Positions 6,879-41,531 of a stretch of DNA of 64,000 nucleotides are shown one piece after another. A program made the translations under genes and the position numbers. Under the pieces are notes generated by a model. The model was not told the origin of the DNA and made no database searches. It worked only from the letters and a program-made list of their open reading frames with translations. Every line of letters starts with the position of its first letter. The stretch's first letter is position 1. Location of the stretch: the sequence record PP813861.1; one strand, given 5' to 3'.

Positions 6879-9800
6879 TTAAATAACAGCACCTTTGGAA
6901 ACTATCCAGTTAGTACCATCCCATAAGAGGGTGAGAACTGTTTTAGTATCACCTAGGTCATCTACTATTACTGGAGTACCATTGTTCCACTGTAGCACTG
7001 CACTAGACAGTGTTGGCATAGCTACCTTACCAAGCAATACAAGAACAGCTGTGATCATGCGATCAACAGGTCCATTCTCTAGTGTAATGGTTTGGTTAGC
7101 AGCAGTTTGAACCCTATAGCACTGCTGGTTAGCAGGTGTTATAGTCAGAGCTGTACCAGTGAATGTACTTGATTTTAGGCTATATGCATCGAATGATTTA
7201 TCTAGCTTCTTCCAAGTAATATTAGTACCAGTACGGCTACGTAGCCAATCACCATCAGCGGTTACATCATTATTCGGACCTTGGAATAGAGTCCATGATT
7301 TAGCCGCAGCATTACGTAGGAATAGTTGTCCACTAGTAGCATCAGCTTGATCAACTATAATAGTTACAGGTGTCCATTTAGAACCACTAGCTGTTTTCTC
7401 ACGTACATAGTTAGTGCCATTAGCACCTTCACTAGGTACTTCACCAATAACTGCGGCTGGTACAGCTACCCATTCACCATTTTGCATACCCATTAGAGTA
7501 TCATCGGTTTGCAGAGGTGCTACATCAACCCAGTTACCAGCTACACGACCTTGAGGCTTAGTAGCTTGTGCAGTATCGCGTACTACATCTGAAGGAATTT
7601 CTGGGAATGTAATGGTAGCCCATTCAGTTTCACCCCCTGCAATACCTTTACGAACGTATTGTGCATTAACAACTGGACTAGGTACAGCATCAATGGCAGG
7701 TGTTGGTAATTCAATAGCAGTCCATTCAACAGCCCCGTCAGCGGTTGCTTTACGGCGACCATAGAAGACACCTACTTCAGCATCTACCACCTCATCAACA
7801 GGTAGTTCAGTCCAACCGAGTTTGTACCGAACCATTTTCTTATCGACATCTTCTGGATCGACTTCACTAACTGGAACTGACATTAATTTGTAGAATACAA
7901 CCCAGTTAGCATCTTTATACCAAACGGTACCAGTTTTGTCGATACACCAGTCACCACGATTACCATCGATAGAAGTGGGTGCAGTTTGACCTTCAGGTAG
8001 AATTACCCAAGAGGATCCACGTTCACCTTTCTGACCGGTTTTACCAGGGATACCTGGAACACCTTGTTTACCTTCAGGACCTTCAGGGCCCTGCGGACCC
8101 ATGGCTAAGACACCTAGGCTTTCCCAAGTAAATGTACCTTCAGTATCGATACTTACAAATACTTCTACTTGTCCTTCAGTATTGGTGCGAATGGCAATAC
8201 CTTTACCTACGTTATCAGCAGATGCTACTGGTTTACCAGCATCATCACCAACATAGATAATTAATAGACCACCACCTTGTTTACCTTCAGGACCTTGTGG
8301 GCCTTCGACACCCTGGATACCCTGCTCACCATTTAGATTAATTGGGCCGATATAGCCATCAATTTCCTGACCTTGGTAAGTATAGAGCATTGTACCTTCG
8401 TTAGTTTCAACCCAGTATGAATCACCAGTTACTAAGTCAGGATCAGTGTCTTTCTTTGGTAGTTGTGAAGCATCGGTTAAAACACCTTTAATGTTTAAAC
8501 CTTCACCCGGTTTACCTTGCGGACCTGCCATAATACCAATGCTAGTCCAGCGACTACCGTCCATGTTAACAAATACTTCGCCCGTGGACTTAACAGTATA
8601 TGCTTTCCATTGGTTATCGGCAAGTGCTTCTGGTGGGGTATCTTCAGGAGTGTCAATCGCTGCGATGATCTGGATAGGTTCACCAGCGGGACCTTGTGGG
8701 CCTTCTGGTCCCTCGGGTCCTTCTGGTCCCTGATCACCGTCTTTACCAGGTGCGCCATCTTCACCTTTAGGACCTCGATGTGTACCACTATTTACCCAAT
8801 TACCATCTATCTTAACAAATAAGGTAGATGTGTCTTGTGTGAAGTACGCTGCCTGATCAGGAGCATCTGCCGGCAGGGCTGCCTCATTGGCAACAGCACC
8901 AGTAATAACTACGTTCTTACCATGTAGACTGATTAACCATTCACCCTCAGTACCAGTGAAGCCATTGTCCAATGCTACTTGGAAAGCCGATTTACCTTGT
9001 GCCCCTGGTTCACCAGGTAGACCTTGTTCGCCATCTTCACCTTGCGGACCTTCAGGGCCCTGCGGGCCACGGAATGAACCCATGGCTGTCCATGAGATAT
9101 CAACAGTCGGATCTTGGCCAGTCAGTACATAAACCGTATTGGTGGAACGTACTGAAACACCTTGGTATTGTTCTACACCAGTGGTGGTTAATAGATCATC
9201 AGCAGTTTCAACTGCTTTAACTACTTCTAAGTTACGACCTTGTGGACCAGGTTCACCTTGTTTACCATCGGGACCCGGATCACCTGTATTACCTGGTTTA
9301 CCTTGTGGGCCCTCAGGGCCTTGGAAAGTACCTAGGTCTGACCATGCCCCTTTTACAAAGATGAATAGATGTTCTGGTTTACCAGCTTCCATAGTAACTA
9401 AGTATGCTTCTGATTCTTTAGCTACAGATGGATCAGGTAAATCAGCTGGTGATGGTAGTGAATCCTTAATGGTAAACGGCATTGCTGGTTCACCCTGAGG
9501 ACCTTCAGGACCAATTTCACCATCTTTACCTTGCGGACCCTCAGGGCCCTCAGGTCCACGTTCACCCTGTGGTGTAACTGGGAACCAATCATAGTCATCA
9601 ATAGTTGGATTCTCTGGCGGATTATTACCTGAGATAAGCATCCACGCCCAGAGTTGATTATTCCATGAATAAGCATCTCCAGGTTTATTACTTTCAGTCT
9701 TAGGTAATTCTAAGTTATTAGGCCAACGACCACGGATAACTAGACCAGTACCATCTGGACCACGAAGTGAACCTGTTTCAACCCAACGACCTTTTACAGG

Positions 9801-10160
9801 GGGGTCTTCATTACCTAGCGGTGATTCCCACACCCATAGCCGATCTTCAACGAACCAAGCATCACCGACATTATGCGTATCTAATGGTTTAATATCTTGT
9901 TCGAATGTTGCTAGATCAACATTAGCGATAATGTTAATAGCCGGACCAACTGGGCCAGGAGGGCCTTGTTCGCCATCTTTACCCGGCTGACCATCTTCAC
10001 CCTTTAATCCAGGTATAGTAACAGGATCAACGAAAGTAGTATTAAGACCCACCCCGGTAGAAACCGGGATGTGTCCATTAACTACAGAAGTGGGCTCATC
10101 AATTGATGATACCCGTTTGGGGAGTTCCCCGTTTACATAATCTTCAAATGCAGAAGCCAT
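6879..10160 (-). CDS. Collagen-like virion fibre protein (about gp146)
   Basis: Many G-X-Y (GPQGPEG) runs alternating with about 50-aa GDAY..W..G repeats; 1093 aa. Confidence 0.85.
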   Translation of the reverse strand: MASAFEDYVNGELPKRVSSIDEPTSVVNGHIPVSTGVGLNTTFVDPVTIPGLKGEDGQPGKDGEQGPPGPVGPAINIIANVDLATFEQDIKPLDTHNVGDAWFVEDRLWVWESPLGNEDPPVKGRWVETGSLRGPDGTGLVIRGRWPNNLELPKTESNKPGDAYSWNNQLWAWMLISGNNPPENPTIDDYDWFPVTPQGERGPEGPEGPQGKDGEIGPEGPQGEPAMPFTIKDSLPSPADLPDPSVAKESEAYLVTMEAGKPEHLFIFVKGAWSDLGTFQGPEGPQGKPGNTGDPGPDGKQGEPGPQGRNLEVVKAVETADDLLTTTGVEQYQGVSVRSTNTVYVLTGQDPTVDISWTAMGSFRGPQGPEGPQGEDGEQGLPGEPGAQGKSAFQVALDNGFTGTEGEWLISLHGKNVVITGAVANEAALPADAPDQAAYFTQDTSTLFVKIDGNWVNSGTHRGPKGEDGAPGKDGDQGPEGPEGPEGPQGPAGEPIQIIAAIDTPEDTPPEALADNQWKAYTVKSTGEVFVNMDGSRWTSIGIMAGPQGKPGEGLNIKGVLTDASQLPKKDTDPDLVTGDSYWVETNEGTMLYTYQGQEIDGYIGPINLNGEQGIQGVEGPQGPEGKQGGGLLIIYVGDDAGKPVASADNVGKGIAIRTNTEGQVEVFVSIDTEGTFTWESLGVLAMGPQGPEGPEGKQGVPGIPGKTGQKGERGSSWVILPEGQTAPTSIDGNRGDWCIDKTGTVWYKDANWVVFYKLMSVPVSEVDPEDVDKKMVRYKLGWTELPVDEVVDAEVGVFYGRRKATADGAVEWTAIELPTPAIDAVPSPVVNAQYVRKGIAGGETEWATITFPEIPSDVVRDTAQATKPQGRVAGNWVDVAPLQTDDTLMGMQNGEWVAVPAAVIGEVPSEGANGTNYVREKTASGSKWTPVTIIVDQADATSGQLFLRNAAAKSWTLFQGPNNDVTADGDWLRSRTGTNITWKKLDKSFDAYSLKSSTFTGTALTITPANQQCYRVQTAANQTITLENGPVDRMITAVLVLLGKVAMPTLSSAVLQWNNGTPVIVDDLGDTKTVLTLLWDGTNWIVSKGAVI

Positions 10161-12529
10161 TATACTACTTCCTCAAGTTCGATTTTCATCAGTCCAGTGG
10201 TGTTGGACACAGCGTTTGCTGAGTCACAGTTATACCACTTATTGCCATCCTTGATGGTGTAGGTGTCAACTTGATTTGCATCATCCGCCTTATAAGTGAA
10301 GTTTAAGCTACCAGTAGAACCTTTAGATAGGTTACTGCAACGTAGTTTACCAGTATTGGTTACTTCAGTACCAATATCAGTTTCACGGTTCGGCCAAGCA
10401 GCCACACTTAGAGTGCGGAATACAAATCCACCTAGTACATAAGTACCACCATTTACACTATTAGCTTCAACACCAGCTAAACCTTTTAGAACCACACTGT
10501 TAAAATCGTAGGTTCCTTTAGGATCATCGTCATGTACTAGTAATGCACGTGTCCATACCTTACCAGTGGCATCAGATTTCCAATCCTCAGTAGCCCACTT
10601 ACCGCCAGGCGCATTCATGGCCGGAGCTGCACTTAGTTTCTGAGTAGAGGTTAAAGTAATGACATGACTTTGTACTTGGGTTCCAAAGTTACCACCTGAA
10701 CGAAGGCGAGCAGCAGGGTAGGTAACCGTCGCAGTAGGTGCCGCATTTGCAATAGCCACAACAGCAGTAGCTGTAGCTACACTACCATTAGCTGCACGTT
10801 TAGCAGTAATTAATAGGTTATTAGTGCTGTCGTTATAAGTACCTGACTTATAAGTAACTACCTTAGCAATTTCTGCTTCATTTGCACTGGTTATAGTAAG
10901 CTGATCATTTGGTGAGGAATAAACCACACTATCAGCATTAGATACCGTATTGGCTACAGTAGCAGTTTCACCTACTTTAATAGCACTTTGACCAGACGGA
11001 TAAGTTACTTGACCAATATTAACAACTGGGCGAAGATCGTTTAACTGCATAGTGTTAATTTTATCTTCGGAACCAGCATCACTGGAAGTAAACCATTCTG
11101 ACCATGATCCAGTTGATTTCTGAACACGTACACGGAAACCATATGCCTTAGTAGTATTACCACGATCAGCTACGTAAAGACCAGTAACCTCTAGTTCTTT
11201 AGTAGGTGCAACAGTACCACTACTTTCTTTCAGTGCACCAAAGTCAGCAATTTCGTATGCTACTATATTTTCATCAGTAACAACTTTAATTGCAACAAGG
11301 TCATCTTCTTTAAGTTCTGTTTGACCTAACGGATAACCGCCAGTAAATACAGCACTAGTAATATTAGCGGGAGTATCGGCTAATACCTTAGTAGTGAATT
11401 TAGCCCCATCGGCGTGTTCTACAACAATATCAGCATAACCTTCAGTAGTAGGTGCACCAAGATCAATATCGGCGGTAGCAATCCACATAGGTGGATTAAC
11501 GCCAGGAGTTACAACTGCATCTACGTTATTGATTTTAACACTAGGTACATAACTAGAATGTCCAGTTATTGCATCAACGATAACCCGAACATTACTAGTA
11601 GTCGATAGGCATGACTGTACGCTGTGTCCATCAGGGGTACGCACAATACTACCTACGTTCTGACTGGGATCAGTTGCTTGTACATCTTTGACGAATACAC
11701 CGCCACTAATACCTTCGTTTTTAGGAAGGTTCTTAAGATCAACAATTGTTTCATCAACGCCTTCAACAATACGGATATTGCCGTCATTCTTGAATGCAAT
11801 GTAATCAGTTAAACTACCAATCTGGAATTCACCATTGTCATAAATACGAATTTCAGACTCAGGTAATTCGGGTAATGCACCTTGCGTAGTGGGTGCAGAG
11901 GCGTTCTTTAGATAAGAATAACCTTCTGCCTCCATACGACCTTGTTCCATCATACGCTGAGGTACTTTATCACCAGCAGTTAAGTCGTCTTGATTTAGAC
12001 GCTTATCAAACAGGAAAGCAAAGTTATGGAAAGCAGCGTTGGATGATAATCCACCATTCTTACCAGTTACACGCAGTACATCTTTAACTGTATAGCCTTG
12101 TTGATTTAAGAGTGTCTGGAGTAGTTCAGCAGTCATGGTTGCATGCAGTGATGTTAACCATTCCTGTTCAGTACCTTGGAAACCATTTTCCACAGCTACT
12201 TCATATGCACTCTTACCAGCATCACCTTTAAGGGATGCTATAAACTCTTCTTCAGTACCAACGAAGCCTAGATCGACTGCGATTTGATAAGAAGATTTAC
12301 CTTTAAGCGAATCAAGCCATTCGGTTTCAGTTCCCTGGAAACCATTTTTAACGGCAATCTCGTACGCACTAAGACCGGGTGCCCCAGTCTGTAGTTTTGA
12401 CAGCAGAAACTTATAGTTATCGACTTGACCAGCTGCATCGGTATGAATTAATTCAATATACTCGCTATCATTAAGAGTAGCTAGATCCGGCAGTTGACTG
12501 ATCTTGCCTTTGTCTGTAGCATTTGCCAT
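10160..12529 (-). CDS. Virion fibre/structural protein (about gp145)
   Basis: N-terminal KISQLP..A.L...E domain, 3x GxSAYExAVxxGFxGTExEWL repeats, beta-rich C-terminus. Confidence 0.8.
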   Translation of the reverse strand: MANATDKGKISQLPDLATLNDSEYIELIHTDAAGQVDNYKFLLSKLQTGAPGLSAYEIAVKNGFQGTETEWLDSLKGKSSYQIAVDLGFVGTEEEFIASLKGDAGKSAYEVAVENGFQGTEQEWLTSLHATMTAELLQTLLNQQGYTVKDVLRVTGKNGGLSSNAAFHNFAFLFDKRLNQDDLTAGDKVPQRMMEQGRMEAEGYSYLKNASAPTTQGALPELPESEIRIYDNGEFQIGSLTDYIAFKNDGNIRIVEGVDETIVDLKNLPKNEGISGGVFVKDVQATDPSQNVGSIVRTPDGHSVQSCLSTTSNVRVIVDAITGHSSYVPSVKINNVDAVVTPGVNPPMWIATADIDLGAPTTEGYADIVVEHADGAKFTTKVLADTPANITSAVFTGGYPLGQTELKEDDLVAIKVVTDENIVAYEIADFGALKESSGTVAPTKELEVTGLYVADRGNTTKAYGFRVRVQKSTGSWSEWFTSSDAGSEDKINTMQLNDLRPVVNIGQVTYPSGQSAIKVGETATVANTVSNADSVVYSSPNDQLTITSANEAEIAKVVTYKSGTYNDSTNNLLITAKRAANGSVATATAVVAIANAAPTATVTYPAARLRSGGNFGTQVQSHVITLTSTQKLSAAPAMNAPGGKWATEDWKSDATGKVWTRALLVHDDDPKGTYDFNSVVLKGLAGVEANSVNGGTYVLGGFVFRTLSVAAWPNRETDIGTEVTNTGKLRCSNLSKGSTGSLNFTYKADDANQVDTYTIKDGNKWYNCDSANAVSNTTGLMKIELEEVV

Positions 12530-13578: not shown

Positions 13579-14112
13579 TTAACTTTCTAGATAACGGATT
13601 TGACCATTTTCTAGATAACGTGCTGCGCCATTCTCTAATAGCCGGATAGTATCTGATGTATCATCAATACGTTGAATTAGTATATTACATTCGCCATAGT
13701 AAGCATAACTACTCGACATAGCTACTATCGTGTATGGAACAACATCCGTAGTTGCATTGATTGGTGTTGTATCAAATGAAACATCATCTGGTCCAAGCTT
13801 CCAACCCCGTGAACGGTTGATTTCTTCAGCAATTGCTTTAGGTGTTAAAGTACCAACTATCTTAAGGATAGATCCTTCACCAATAGCTCGTGGATCAGCA
13901 AAATCTAACCGACGGTAAGTTAACATGTACTTAATGTCAGTAGTAATGTCGATCATTTCAATAAATGTACGTCCAGGCTCAATCGTGGTTGGACTAAAAA
14001 ACATATCTTCAAATGTAACTGTTTCTGGTTTGAAGTTTATTTTTAAATCATCCCGCGCAAGTTTTACTAGCGCGTCCCTCGATGCCATGTCATACGGAAA
14101 GATATCCTGCAT
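13579..14112 (-). CDS. Virion structural protein (about gp143), YxRLDF family, with C-terminal RxLENG repeats
   Basis: YRRLDF motif; ends RLLENGAARYLENGQIRYLES. Confidence 0.75.
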   Translation of the reverse strand: MQDIFPYDMASRDALVKLARDDLKINFKPETVTFEDMFFSPTTIEPGRTFIEMIDITTDIKYMLTYRRLDFADPRAIGEGSILKIVGTLTPKAIAEEINRSRGWKLGPDDVSFDTTPINATTDVVPYTIVAMSSSYAYYGECNILIQRIDDTSDTIRLLENGAARYLENGQIRYLES

Positions 14113-14194: not shown

Positions 14195-14590
14195 TTATTG
14201 CATAAGCATCTTTATTAATTCAAAGGTACCTTGCACAATAGTCTTTAACACATTGGCACTTTCTTCTGACATAGGTGCACCAGATAAAACTACCATAGTA
14301 GATACTGATGCCCCAATAAGAGTAACACCACCAGCTAATACCAATACCGCATTACGGTAAGAATCTTTAGCCTTCACTTCAGCAATTTCCCGGCTGAGAA
14401 TTTTATATTGAAGATCTGAATCGGTAATAGCATAAATTAGACTAAGTACTTCCTCACCAGTTATACTTAGATTTATACGTTGTTCCTTTTCCAATACACT
14501 ATTCAAATAGGTACGTATCTTCTTTCCATAGTCTTTAGAAGAAGATAAAGGATTACCATCGATCTCAATCAGAACGTCCTCTAGGGTCAT
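14195..14590 (-). CDS. Membrane protein, holin candidate (about gp142)
   Basis: Hydrophobic segment AVLVLAGGVTLIGASVSTMVVL; lies between spanins and endolysin; start revised to ATG 14590. Confidence 0.45.
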   Translation of the reverse strand: MTLEDVLIEIDGNPLSSSKDYGKKIRTYLNSVLEKEQRINLSITGEEVLSLIYAITDSDLQYKILSREIAEVKAKDSYRNAVLVLAGGVTLIGASVSTMVVLSGAPMSEESANVLKTIVQGTFELIKMLMQ

Positions 14591-31653: not shown

Positions 31654-32529
<876 letters not shown>

Positions 32530-32537
32530 GGTGTGTA

Positions 32538-32981
32538 ATGGCTGATACAAGAGCTGAATTAGTAGCTGCTTGGAATGTGGCTAATAAACCTAAAGATAAT
32601 AATGGTAAGCCTAGGGATTTAACTGTTGATGATGTTGAATTTATAGGGACTGATACATTCTTAGCAACTGGTACAAATGCCAAAACAACAATGAGAGCGA
32701 AGACCAGTTCACTTTATTTTAAAGGTGAGACAGTTATTTACTTTAATAGACGCTCTTTACCAGAGTACTGTCTTGGTATAAAAGTACCGGGTAAACCAAC
32801 TGACTATACTGATAATTTAGAAGTAGCTGAAAAATTAAGAGATGTTTACGGTATTCCATTTATTATAGATGAGATACAACCGCAACCTATTACTGGGAAT
32901 ACGGTTACGATACATCCATACTTTAATAACTTGTCGTGGATACCAACAATACCAGTAACTCTTGAATTTGAAAGTAGTTAA
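32538..32981 (+). CDS. Virion structural protein, same family (about gp126)
   Basis: IYFNRRSL motif, similar layout to gp143. Confidence 0.68.
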   Translation: MADTRAELVAAWNVANKPKDNNGKPRDLTVDDVEFIGTDTFLATGTNAKTTMRAKTSSLYFKGETVIYFNRRSLPEYCLGIKVPGKPTDYTDNLEVAEKLRDVYGIPFIIDEIQPQPITGNTVTIHPYFNNLSWIPTIPVTLEFESS

Positions 32982-39150: not shown

Positions 39151-39177
39151 ACTTTTTTTAATGTAATACAACATAAA

Positions 39178-39197
39178 GCCCTCCCCGAAGGGAGGGC
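39178..39197 (-). terminator. UUCG terminator of the capsid transcript
   Basis: GCCCTCCC-TTCG-GGGAGGGC-TTTAT. Confidence 0.9.
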
Positions 39198-39209
39198 CTA
39201 TGTCTGTTA

Positions 39210-39287
39210 CTATTCTAACTTCCGGGCATTACCGTCTTCCAAATAACGGATAGTCCCATTTTCTAGATAACGGTAACCCTTTCCAGC
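39210..39287 (-). other. Putative in-frame readthrough extension of the major capsid protein (25 aa)
   Basis: After TGA 39290-39288: AGKGYRYLENGTIRYLEDGNARKLE then TAG TAA; motif shared with gp143. Confidence 0.7.
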
Positions 39288-41531
39288 TCACGGCTTAAGA
39301 TCAGCAAGCTTACCGTTGAACTGAGTTTCACCCATGACTTTCTGGAAGCCAGTGATCTTGAACTCTAGCGCGAACGGAATGTTGTTGACGTGTAGGTTGA
39401 ACGGAATGGCCGCGATTTCGCGAGTAACCTGGTGACCACCACGAGTGATCGGTAGGTCAGCGATAACAGTAGATACGTAGAAGAACTGACCCCAGGAGAG
39501 GATGTCGTTTTCTTGTTGTACTGCGCGGGTCGGAATTACAACTAGCTTACCATCAAATAGCTGGTTGTTGGTGGAAACGATATCGTACTTGAGATAAGCA
39601 CCTAGAGTACGGTCGTCACCTTTAGTCATTAGATAGTTAGCAATCTCTTTGTCGGAGCAGAAGAGATACATCGGAGTTTCATCCTGGTTACCGGAGATAA
39701 CACGGAAGGCAGCTTCAATGTTGGAATCACGGTGAGCCGGGAATAGCTCAGCTTTAACACAGTTTAGGATCGCAGCGCAAACGTCGTCCCAACGATCTTT
39801 AGACTTGATGGTGTCGATGACTTTCTCAAGATCTAGTTCTTTGTAACGATAGGTCGGACGCATTACAGCGGATAGTGCACCTTCGATGATACCAAACTTC
39901 GGACGGTTGTAACCATTGTGTACAACTTCACGTAGTTGAGCAAGGTAGTTAAGCATGCGCTTAACAGCGTTGTTGCTGTTACGGATGTTGGTGTTAACGG
40001 TTAGAGCTTTAACAACCTCACCCGGACCTTCATCGGTCATGGTGTCCATCGGTAGAGTTACAGGAGCGTGCATCGGGATCGGATGACGGAACTGTAGTGC
40101 ACGGGTCTGTAGTAGGTGACCACGCTGACGACGGTTGGTGTTGGTGAAGCGAGTATCTAGTTCGAAACCGATAACAGCTAGGTCAGTTAGCTGATCTAGA
40201 ATAGCTTTAACAGCCGGGTCAGCATTATCCATTACTTGACCATCTTCGTTTAGAACTTTATCGACGTAAGTGTCGGTAGCACCAAACTTAGAATCGCCTT
40301 TGGATAGGCTGATAGTACCGCCGAAACCAACGCTTAGACGTAGGCTTAGTTTAGCAGTCTTAAGGTCGTTAATAACGCCATCAGCTGAACCGTCGATGAA
40401 AGTGGTATCGCCACTAACAACAAGGTCATCGCTATCGAAACGGATAACTGCGTTCCGGGTATCACCAACTAGATCGGGCTGGAACACAGCGCGAGGTAGA
40501 CGGTCAACCTTGAACTTAACAACTTTACCGCCGAGTAGAACGAATAGGTTCTTTAGACGACCAGCCGGATCAATGGTGTCAGAAACTTCAAGCATGCCAC
40601 GCTGAATGAGTAGGTTAGCATTGGAGTTACCCATTAGATCAAGACGTACGTTCGCTTTTAGCGGAGCAGTAGTGATAGTTAGGTTCTGCTCGTTCTTGAT
40701 GGTGTACGGAGGAACAAGAGCCGGGTCTACGAAGAAGTCAGCATTGGAGCCAGCCGGATCTAGGGCAGGAATTAGCGCAATGCTTTCGTCGTCGAGGATG
40801 GAAGGATCACGATAGGCTTCTACCATGTTCACTTCTTCATTATCCATCTTAACGCCGGATACTTCGTGGTAAACGTCTTTCATTACAGCGATGTAAGGAA
40901 GAACCTGAACAACACCACCTTCAATCGGGTTGATAACGGTGGTCGGATAAATACGCTCAGCGAATTCATCTTGACGGCTAGCAGCTAGGTTATAACCAAT
41001 AGTTACAACACGGAAATCACGCTGTGACTTCTCGTTATAGTTCTCTAGGCCAACACCATTTTCGAATACTTGAATGCCACCAGCGGGGCCATTGAACTGA
41101 TGCTGTACAACCTTAACATGATCTTCATTAGAAGCTTTAGCTTTGGTAATACCACGTAGTGCACGGATATATTTAGTTTCATCAGCACAGGCGATAGCAG
41201 CCATGGTAGCAGCAGTGATCTGGTTCTCACGAACACGTTCTTCACGAGCACGTACTTGAGGATCACTGGAACTTACTCGTTCGAAACCATAGTCGTTAAC
41301 GAGCATTTGCATTTTGTTATAAATTGCAGCAGCATCTTGAACGTCGGTAGCTTGTACGGTACCGAAGTTTTCATGTGAAATGGTGCTAACAAGGGAACGA
41401 CCTTGACTAACAACGCTGTCATTTAGACCAATTTCACTTTCTAGGCGGCCAATGAAATCTTCCATTGAGAAGACTTCGTATTTCTTTTCGCCTTTGTGTT
41501 TAAACAGTTCTCTTAGGGCATGTACGCTCAT
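39288..41531 (-). CDS. Major capsid protein (gp120)
   Basis: 747 aa, SME/GLE cleavage motifs, strong codon bias and raised GC; recognised phiKZ-type capsid. Confidence 0.95.
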   Translation of the reverse strand: MSVHALRELFKHKGEKKYEVFSMEDFIGRLESEIGLNDSVVSQGRSLVSTISHENFGTVQATDVQDAAAIYNKMQMLVNDYGFERVSSSDPQVRAREERVRENQITAATMAAIACADETKYIRALRGITKAKASNEDHVKVVQHQFNGPAGGIQVFENGVGLENYNEKSQRDFRVVTIGYNLAASRQDEFAERIYPTTVINPIEGGVVQVLPYIAVMKDVYHEVSGVKMDNEEVNMVEAYRDPSILDDESIALIPALDPAGSNADFFVDPALVPPYTIKNEQNLTITTAPLKANVRLDLMGNSNANLLIQRGMLEVSDTIDPAGRLKNLFVLLGGKVVKFKVDRLPRAVFQPDLVGDTRNAVIRFDSDDLVVSGDTTFIDGSADGVINDLKTAKLSLRLSVGFGGTISLSKGDSKFGATDTYVDKVLNEDGQVMDNADPAVKAILDQLTDLAVIGFELDTRFTNTNRRQRGHLLQTRALQFRHPIPMHAPVTLPMDTMTDEGPGEVVKALTVNTNIRNSNNAVKRMLNYLAQLREVVHNGYNRPKFGIIEGALSAVMRPTYRYKELDLEKVIDTIKSKDRWDDVCAAILNCVKAELFPAHRDSNIEAAFRVISGNQDETPMYLFCSDKEIANYLMTKGDDRTLGAYLKYDIVSTNNQLFDGKLVVIPTRAVQQENDILSWGQFFYVSTVIADLPITRGGHQVTREIAAIPFNLHVNNIPFALEFKITGFQKVMGETQFNGKLADLKP

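Follow-up and report, generated by a model that had tools for sequence, protein, structure and literature searches.

The capsid proteins of some bacterial viruses are lengthened by recoding, as in the A1 protein of Q-beta, which arises by UGA readthrough of the coat gene, and gp10B of T7, which arises by frameshift. Immunoglobulin-like domains are also found as additions to phage structural proteins. In the baseplate of Pseudomonas phage JBD30, the trimeric receptor-binding protein gp54 takes up the C-terminus of the hub protein gp53 in its N-terminal 'thigh' domain (PDB 8RK3; PMC11445458). A study of phage Goslar showed gp22 filaments, predicted head-to-tail oligomers of DUF7941 proteins in which each protomer uses the region behind its N-terminal domain to bind the next, placed gp126-gp127 at the phiKZ outer baseplate and listed gp143 as the third phiKZ DUF7941 protein (bioRxiv 10.64898/2026.04.21.720040). 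The present analysis concerns the C-terminal tail of gp143, encoded in a 64,000-nucleotide stretch of sequence record PP813861.1 (the window), and a similar peptide encoded in frame behind the TGA stop codon of the major capsid gene, gp120. Judged from the genes and their neighbourhoods, the last 21 residues of gp143 and the post-stop capsid peptide are probably a fibre-docking tag for the N-terminal domain of a gp145-type fibre protein.

The window is DNA of a phiKZ-type Pseudomonas jumbo phage in an orientation reversed relative to phiKZ numbering, and the two window segments that were compared are 99-100% identical to phiKZ-type phages. The features on which the argument rests are the following:

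13579..14112, minus strand: gp143 (177 residues), an open reading frame (ORF) with a DUF7941-type globular part (~residues 1-150) and the C-terminal tag
13585..13644, minus strand: gp143 tag, residues R157-E176, two octads R-x-L-E-N-G-x-x and then R-x-L-E, followed by S177 and the stop
10160..12529, minus strand: gp145, a fibre protein of 789 residues and the proposed receptor-bearing partner (ORF; PHROG 15433 and fibre-repeat PHROGs)
12383..12508, minus strand: N-terminal K-I-S-x-L...E...E domain of gp145 (~residues 8-49), the proposed tag site (alignment, profile)
39288..41531, minus strand: gp120, the major capsid protein (747 residues), ending ...ADLKP before TGA (matches PDB 8y6v_a over 1-747)
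39213..39287, minus strand: post-stop capsid stretch of 25 in-frame sense codons, a 5-residue Gly-rich linker and the putative tag (39213-39272)
39207-39212, minus strand: TAG TAA closing the post-stop stretch
39176..39199, minus strand: intrinsic-terminator-like hairpin beyond the second stop (10-bp stem, 7 G-C pairs, T-rich tail)

The C-terminus of the 177-residue gp143 ORF reads ...TIRLLENGAARYLENGQIRYLES and consists of three units spaced by eight residues, RLLENGAA, RYLENGQI and RYLE, followed by a serine and the stop codon. Each unit has an arginine at position 1 and a glutamate at position 4, with a glycine at position 6 of the first two, while the third is reduced to R-x-x-E; the arginine codons lie at 13644, 13620 and 13596, and only one residue (S177) separates the tag from the end of the chain. 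An earlier note on this DNA had proposed a repeat with an 8-residue period at the extreme C-terminus of gp143, and its coordinates are exact, as 13579-13650 comprises the three units and the stop and nothing else. A protein search retrieved 54 relatives of gp143, of which 52 are full-length (32-98% identity, 173-207 residues), and all 52 end in three R..E units at 8-residue spacing. Five of the 15 invariant columns of the 52-sequence alignment fall in the last 21 residues (R157, E160, R165, E168 and R173), and G162 and G170 are nearly invariant. By this alignment, the tail is the best-conserved part of the gp143 family. It is also present in the named orthologues of PhiPA3, PS119XW, RVTF4, Viktualia, 201phi2-1, Psa21, Phabio and Noxifer.

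The RxLENG-type repeat is confined to two places in the phage, the gp143 tail and the post-stop capsid stretch, according to a six-frame scan of the window and of the remainder of the phiKZ genome (NC_004629), which was fetched piecewise with each piece scanned. The same scan agrees with the earlier claim that gp126 and gp127 lack the repeat. Outside phiKZ, a degenerate DNA pattern of three units was scanned over 2.9 million viral contigs of IMG/VR and matched at least 120 stretches, almost all of which translate to clean tags, on contigs of 4 to 320 kb. The counts that follow refer to the matches listed. The tag lies within five residues of the stop codon in 90 of 109 distinct matches, and 45 tags of other phages show no variation in the tag columns, a figure to be read with the scan pattern in mind, as it required these columns itself. 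The carriers are diverse. They include siphophage hub/J proteins (phrog_1101, PF13550), one of which scores 458 bits to JBD30 gp53 (8rk3_o; locus L067), as well as P2 gpI-type baseplate proteins (PF09684), tail tube proteins (PF06199), a beta-helix spike, a PASTA-containing baseplate protein and very small ORFs. The 70 C-terminal residues of one tag-bearing hub protein had no match in the PDB, and a text search of the literature for tag and N-domain strings returned unrelated words only. The tag appears to represent a class of C-terminal tags that is widespread on fibre-bearing phage proteins and hitherto undescribed.

Some of the carriers are of interest in their own right. The tail-tube carriers, which belong to PF06199 and are related to the RcGTA tube protein (L090, L094, L129, L139, L142, L143, L169 and L176), bear the tag as a C-terminal addition of ~25 residues, which suggests that fibres or other K-I-S-x-L proteins are placed along the tail tube. 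The very small ORFs (~40-70 residues) combine a short hydrophobic or beta-like start with the tag (L072:2283-2408, L096, L153, L070 and L101:5512-5694); each directly precedes a large fibre gene of the K-I-S-x-L type, and they could be minimal adaptors. The hub protein of Stenotrophomonas phage Bhz63 (L182:2654-5685) has a degenerate C-terminal tag that has lost part of its arginines, and K-L-S-Q-L opens the gene behind it, so that the pair of tag and N-domain seems to tolerate drift.

The gene that follows a tag gene frequently begins with a characteristic N-terminal domain. K-I-S-x-L occurs within the first 16 residues of the next gene for 40 of the 83 testable tags, that is, C-terminal tags with enough downstream sequence, against a background of 4.4% taken from the same loci (~11-fold enrichment, binomial p ~7e-32), and this gene usually starts -4 to +12 nt from the stop of the tag gene. 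When the domain was searched as a profile, a same-strand N-domain was present in the fetched locus for 61 of 98 tags. An alignment of 36 N-domains has an I, an S and one E as invariant positions, and the N-terminus of gp145, MANATDKGKISQLPDLATLNDSEYIELI, fits it well. A profile built from 28 non-jumbo N-domains has a single significant match in six frames of the phiKZ genome, at gp145 residues ~8-49 (23.8 bits, E 3.8e-6), so the phage has one receptor candidate and two tags. The N-terminal sequence and this independent profile both uphold the earlier description of gp145 as opening with a K-I-S-x-L-type domain, whereas gp146 lacks such a start. The protein gp145 has no Pfam match and no PDB sequence match, a word-based homologue search with its residues 1-48 returned only gp145 itself, and five N-domains gave nothing in Pfam at E values up to 5. 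A search for a natural protein containing both N-domain and tag found none.

In phiKZ, one gene (gp144) separates gp145 from gp143; among more distant jumbo phages, the gp143-like gene either stands directly before a collagen-like gene starting K-I-S-E-L (L099) or has the gene order of phiKZ. The gp143-like tail and K-I-S-x-L fibre genes occur together in two such distant lineages, in which the capsid gene has a TAA stop and no extension, and in one of the two they belong to neighbouring genes. The earlier note held that the peptide should co-occur with gp145-like domains and that phages keeping the one while lacking the other would speak against a docking pair. Co-occurrence is strongly positive by the neighbour counts above, and where a comparison can be made, as in the two distant jumbo lineages, the peptide was not seen without such a domain. 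The comparative evidence thereby lends support to a single shared peptide-receptor pair, as that note had envisaged. The number of receptor-like genes varies, with two tandem K-I-S-x-L-type N-domain genes lying 3' of the endolysin gene in PhiPA3, PS119XW, RVTF4 and Psa21 and one in phiKZ:

L053:33933-37494: tandem N-domain genes of PhiPA3
L056:37315-39501: tandem N-domain genes of PS119XW
L057:35790-38001: tandem N-domain genes of RVTF4
L055:3844-5522: tandem N-domain genes of Psa21

The globular body of gp143 points to a different candidate partner for the tail. The protein matches PHROG 2935 over its whole length (156.6 bits), while the match of gp126 to this profile stops at position 154 of 180, where the tail of gp143 begins; gp143, gp126 and gp127 have PHROGs 2935 and 1037 in common. 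The Pfam match of gp143 to DUF7941 (PF25613; 18.3 bits, E 0.0017) covers residues 64-148 only and lies below the curated cut-off of 27 bits, and a precomputed PF25613 match exists in 17 gp143 homologues. An AlphaFold2 model built on the 52-sequence alignment has a mean predicted local distance difference test (pLDDT) score of 89, and its top Foldseek match is PDB 9xqd_0, which is PHIKZ127 (E 5.6e-7, probability 1.00, target-normalised TM-score 0.68). With PHROG, model and structural match in agreement, the body of gp143 is a DUF7941-type domain despite the sub-cut-off Pfam score. The paralogy of gp143 with gp126 and gp127, which the earlier note had assumed, is real and remote, visible at the level of profile and fold and missed by BLASTP (E 5.6 and 0.51, respectively). 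The two paralogues are encoded at a distance from gp143:

31657..32981, plus strand: gp127 and gp126, remote DUF7941 paralogues of gp143 that bear no tag (PHROG, six-frame scan)
31657..32529, plus strand: gp127
32538..32981, plus strand: gp126

The gp143 tail might accordingly bind the N-terminal domains of DUF7941 proteins and contribute to head-to-tail filaments at the outer baseplate, and the capsid extension would recruit such filaments. The DUF7941 fold of gp143, with the tail directly after the globular domain, fits this idea, as do the predicted Goslar oligomers, the gp22 filaments and the baseplate site of gp126-gp127. However, gp126 and gp127 lack the motif, so the contact predicted for them does not use the tag. 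The tag is also common on the hub, baseplate and tube proteins of small phages, whereas DUF7941 is reported to be exclusive to chimalliviruses, and the neighbour that recurs next to tags is the K-I-S-x-L domain rather than DUF7941. We regard DUF7941 docking as unlikely.

It is similarly improbable, in our estimation, that the tag is a structural cap with no partner, for example a small three-rung beta element that stabilises the chain end or binds an ion or glycan, and that the K-I-S-x-L neighbours merely reflect the usual order of tail genes. The tail does adopt a regular shape in the partner-free monomer model of gp143, with beta-bridges every eight residues and pLDDT values of 74-85, and the fetched locus contains no N-domain for ~38% of the tags. 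Yet the carriers are otherwise unrelated, and the sole other conserved element at the junction is the N-domain of the next gene. The ~11-fold enrichment would be hard to obtain from gene order alone, and a capsid protein has no need of a cap added by recoding.

The second place of the repeat lies behind the capsid gene. After the TGA of gp120, the capsid frame continues with the linker AGKGY and the units RYLENGTI, RYLEDGNA and RKLE before TAG TAA. Two tryptic peptides of this stretch, YLENGTIR and YLEDGNAR, have no second occurrence in six frames of the genome. The 17-mer CGTTATCTAGAAAATGG has exactly two copies in the window, at 13604-13620(-) in the gp143 tail and at 39256-39272(-), 16 nt beyond the capsid TGA and in the capsid frame (2 matches observed against 0.04 expected by chance; two matches in 0/100 shuffles), which corroborates the earlier report of 17 nucleotides common to both. 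Since the chance that all five codons are identical given the shared hexapeptide is ~0.02 with this phage's codon usage, the 17-nt identity adds little beyond the shared peptide. Capsid loci were examined in IMG/VR contigs and named phages; in one of them (L041), the gene left the contig before the stop and was unscored. In all 22 related loci examined, TGA is followed in frame by 24-30 open codons that encode a short Gly/Pro-rich linker and three units. The extension-bearing capsid genes comprise all those with at least 63% protein identity to that of the window and one at 56%, together with those of named phages and Noxifer-type loci. At 52-55% and 23-32% identity, the capsid gene instead has a TAA stop, followed by 3-8 unrelated codons and no extension, and this split between TGA with and TAA without an extension was seen over the first 31 loci.

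A further alternative, limited to the capsid locus, is that the post-stop stretch is untranslated, being either what is left of a once longer gene in decay or part of an RNA element close to the terminator. An extended capsid protein is unreported, and residue 747 is the last in the solved capsid model. The stretch in the window also has a strong RNA hairpin, 9 nt past the capsid TGA (39225-39281(-), -25.5 kcal/mol, z -3.8, 0/200 shuffles). This hairpin is the pairing of the first with the second tag unit; it is absent in two relatives, 201phi2-1 and another (z 0.14 and -1.4). With the terminator placed past the second stop, transcripts of the capsid gene would run through the extension. A decaying remnant is also at odds with a frame kept open in 22/22 loci down to 56% capsid identity and with the strict division between TGA and TAA. 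The uncorrected ratio of nonsynonymous to synonymous differences (pN/pS) over 21 aligned extensions is 0.58 in the capsid frame versus 0.87 and 1.05 in the other frames, with 0.39 for the last 30 capsid codons, and the conserved arginines are encoded by CGN as well as AGR codons, that is, with switches of codon family. These patterns indicate constraint on the post-stop stretch at the protein level, and an untranslated element is in our judgement improbable.

The layout resembles a conserved leaky UGA, from which an extended capsid protein would be made at some rate. The base after the TGA is A in 16 and G in 6 of the 22 loci, and the final capsid residue is P or A in 18 of them. The annotated phage tRNAs are those for Thr, Asn, Asp, Met, Pro and Leu only and include no suppressor. 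Insertion of selenocysteine at the capsid TGA was set aside because no conserved hairpin follows the stop. In the capsid structure, the six C-terminal arms form the central helix bundle of the hexamer, and those of the pentamer contact gp244 (PMC11297242), which the virion atlas locates on the outer surface. As the arms meet at the capsomer centre, an extension would start at capsomer centres.

Three observations concern single loci. Locus L031:3454-4065 (IMG/VR 3300043122_000192) has a capsid gene with 55% identity to that of the window and a TGA stop. Behind the stop, in the same frame, stands an ORF of 203 codons that encodes a Big_2 Ig-like domain (36.7 bits); since its third codon is ATG, this ORF may be either a readthrough extension or a separate decoration gene. 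In Viktualia (L058:9136-9234), the depositors' annotation includes a 'hypothetical protein' of 33 codons lying across the capsid gene end and the extension region, an indication that gene callers react to the stretch. A non-jumbo, 28-kb IMG/VR contig (L127:824-1873, minus strand) has a 322-codon open stretch (phrog_24272, function unknown) with a TGA stop, behind which a start-less 7-codon linker and a full tag continue in frame, which is the same layout as that of the phiKZ capsid extension.

The genes around gp143 bear on its known role and on the fibre that it might hold:

14195..14590, minus strand: gp142, the holin reported as partner of the gp143 globular part (ORF and annotation; PMC12894885)
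12735..13517, minus strand: gp144 transglycosylase (endolysin), between gp143 and gp145 (Pfam PG_binding_1 and SLT)
6879..10160, minus strand: gp146, a collagen-like fibre protein of 1093 residues (ORF; Pfam Collagen 87.6 bits, 6 stretches)

The least probable of the alternatives, and very unlikely, is that the tail serves a lysis-regulator role, for example by binding the holin or another lysis factor, with the likeness to the capsid peptide convergent or irrelevant: gp143 does alter the triggering time of the gp142 holin, reportedly via the cytoplasmic domain of the latter, and sits in a lysis cassette whose synteny is kept in relatives, but the holin contact is predicted on its first globular domain and the tail is undiscussed (PMC12894885), the same tag ends dozens of tail proteins unlinked to lysis, and virion records exist for gp143 orthologues. 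In 201phi2-1, the counterpart of the gp142 holin, gp227 (L054:1994-2407), is itself listed with a virion identification by mass spectrometry, together with the gp143 orthologue, which is odd for a holin.

Several observations count against fibre docking by the gp143 tail and the capsid peptide. The protein is an experimentally supported regulator of holin timing, which in expression experiments makes the wild-type gp142 holin trigger earlier and blocks a truncated allele, 142 delta(2-60) (PMC12894885). Transposon mutagenesis gave five insertions in orf143 and none in gp145 or gp146; gp143 is therefore dispensable while gp145 and gp146 are not, and it cannot be the sole anchor of an essential fibre. 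The tags for which the fetched locus has no N-domain, discussed above, belong here as well; many of these loci are short or have the carrier at a distance from fibre genes. No PDB chain is matched by the profile of the tag or by that of the N-domain, and the docking geometry is accordingly conjecture. The two components found here are also absent from the closest precedent, as JBD30 gp53 has no R..E.G repeat and gp54 no K-I-S-x-L start, so that the precedent is positional only. Readthrough of the capsid gene is unreported in the searchable literature. Finally, the gp143 tail and the capsid extension showed no co-variation within genomes (permutation p 0.8; crude register), and the 17-nt identity can be explained without recent gene conversion.

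The position of gp143 in the virion bears on the same question. Database notes record phiKZ gp143 and 201phi2-1 gp228 as virion proteins. The 40-protein atlas of the phiKZ virion leaves gp143, gp145 and gp146 unplaced, builds twelve baseplate fibres from gp131/133/134/135, and models the gp144 endolysin in the neck, wedged as a structural component between neck whiskers and sheath (PMC13250141). The RefSeq note 'structural head protein' on gp145 and gp146 is unverified, and the same note stands on the tail sheath. Absence from the atlas is compatible with flexibly tethered parts, for which it would be expected. Taken together, the dispensability of gp143, its holin role, the gaps in the atlas and the virion records are compatible with, though no proof of, a flexibly tethered fibre with more than one attachment site.

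Because of its position at the chain end and the order of the genes, and with the JBD30 precedent, the tag is best read as a docking peptide for a trimeric fibre encoded downstream. The tag would then mark proteins from which fibres hang, namely hub/J proteins, P2 gpI-type baseplate proteins, tail tubes, spikes, tiny adaptor ORFs and a DUF7941 protein. Its likeliest partner would be the ~40-residue N-terminal K-I-S-x-L...E...E domain of the downstream fibre, which in phiKZ points to gp145 alone. A single chain of three units could engage the three identical N-domains of a fibre trimer, and the 1:3 symmetry mismatch would thereby be solved. In the phiKZ clade, occasional UGA readthrough would place a tag at the centre of a few capsomers, and the tagged capsomers could carry the gp145/gp146 fibre on heads too. 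A fuller proposal is held more tentatively, as a possibility worth stating: conserved UGA readthrough would tag a few capsomers, the essential gp145/gp146 fibre would be partly a head fibre, and tag and N-domain would form a general, portable pair by which many kinds of tailed phages attach trimeric fibres to hubs, baseplates, tubes and heads. It is less likely that the gp143 tag, placed beside a holin-binding domain, ties the assembly status of fibre and capsid to the lysis clock.

These possibilities matter because phiKZ is a model jumbo phage whose capsid and whole virion have been solved, with gp143, gp145 and gp146 missing from the models. If the docking pair is true, tag and receptor would tell where gp143, gp145 and gp146 attach and explain why they are invisible to averaging. 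Annotators would also gain a simple rule by which fibre-anchoring proteins, and the fibres that go with them, could be recognised in thousands of phage genomes not yet characterised. Recoding of the capsid gene in a double-stranded DNA jumbo phage would be a new entry in the short list of readthrough products of bacterial viruses.

The proposed system combines two known kinds of arrangement, the docking of a C-terminal peptide into a fibre N-domain and the extension of a capsid protein by recoding. It resembles JBD30 in that a single C-terminal peptide of an anchor protein would sit in the N-terminal domain of a trimer that the next gene encodes, and many tag carriers are homologues of gp53 (458 bits, as above) with the tag at that same end. 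It differs in that gp143 is not a hub protein: a search of gp143 against PDB sequences gave no match, and it is not a homologue of gp53. The pair of tag and N-domain is also without a solved structure. With the DUF7941 filament proteins of Goslar (gp22/gp23) and phiKZ (gp126-gp127), gp143 shares the N-terminal fold, whereas the tag is confined to the gp143 branch of these proteins and is found far outside the chimalliviruses. The Ig-like additions find a counterpart in the Big_2 ORF of L031, which stands behind a capsid TGA in the same position as the tag; unlike the tag, it is a folded domain rather than a short peptide and possibly a separate gene. As in Q-beta A1 and T7 gp10B, a minority of phiKZ capsid subunits would gain a C-terminal extension, here via a leaky UGA, with TGA in 22/22 loci. 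In contrast to these two, the phiKZ extension has 24-30 residues and resembles a docking tag rather than a domain, and the host of the arrangement is a double-stranded DNA jumbo phage.

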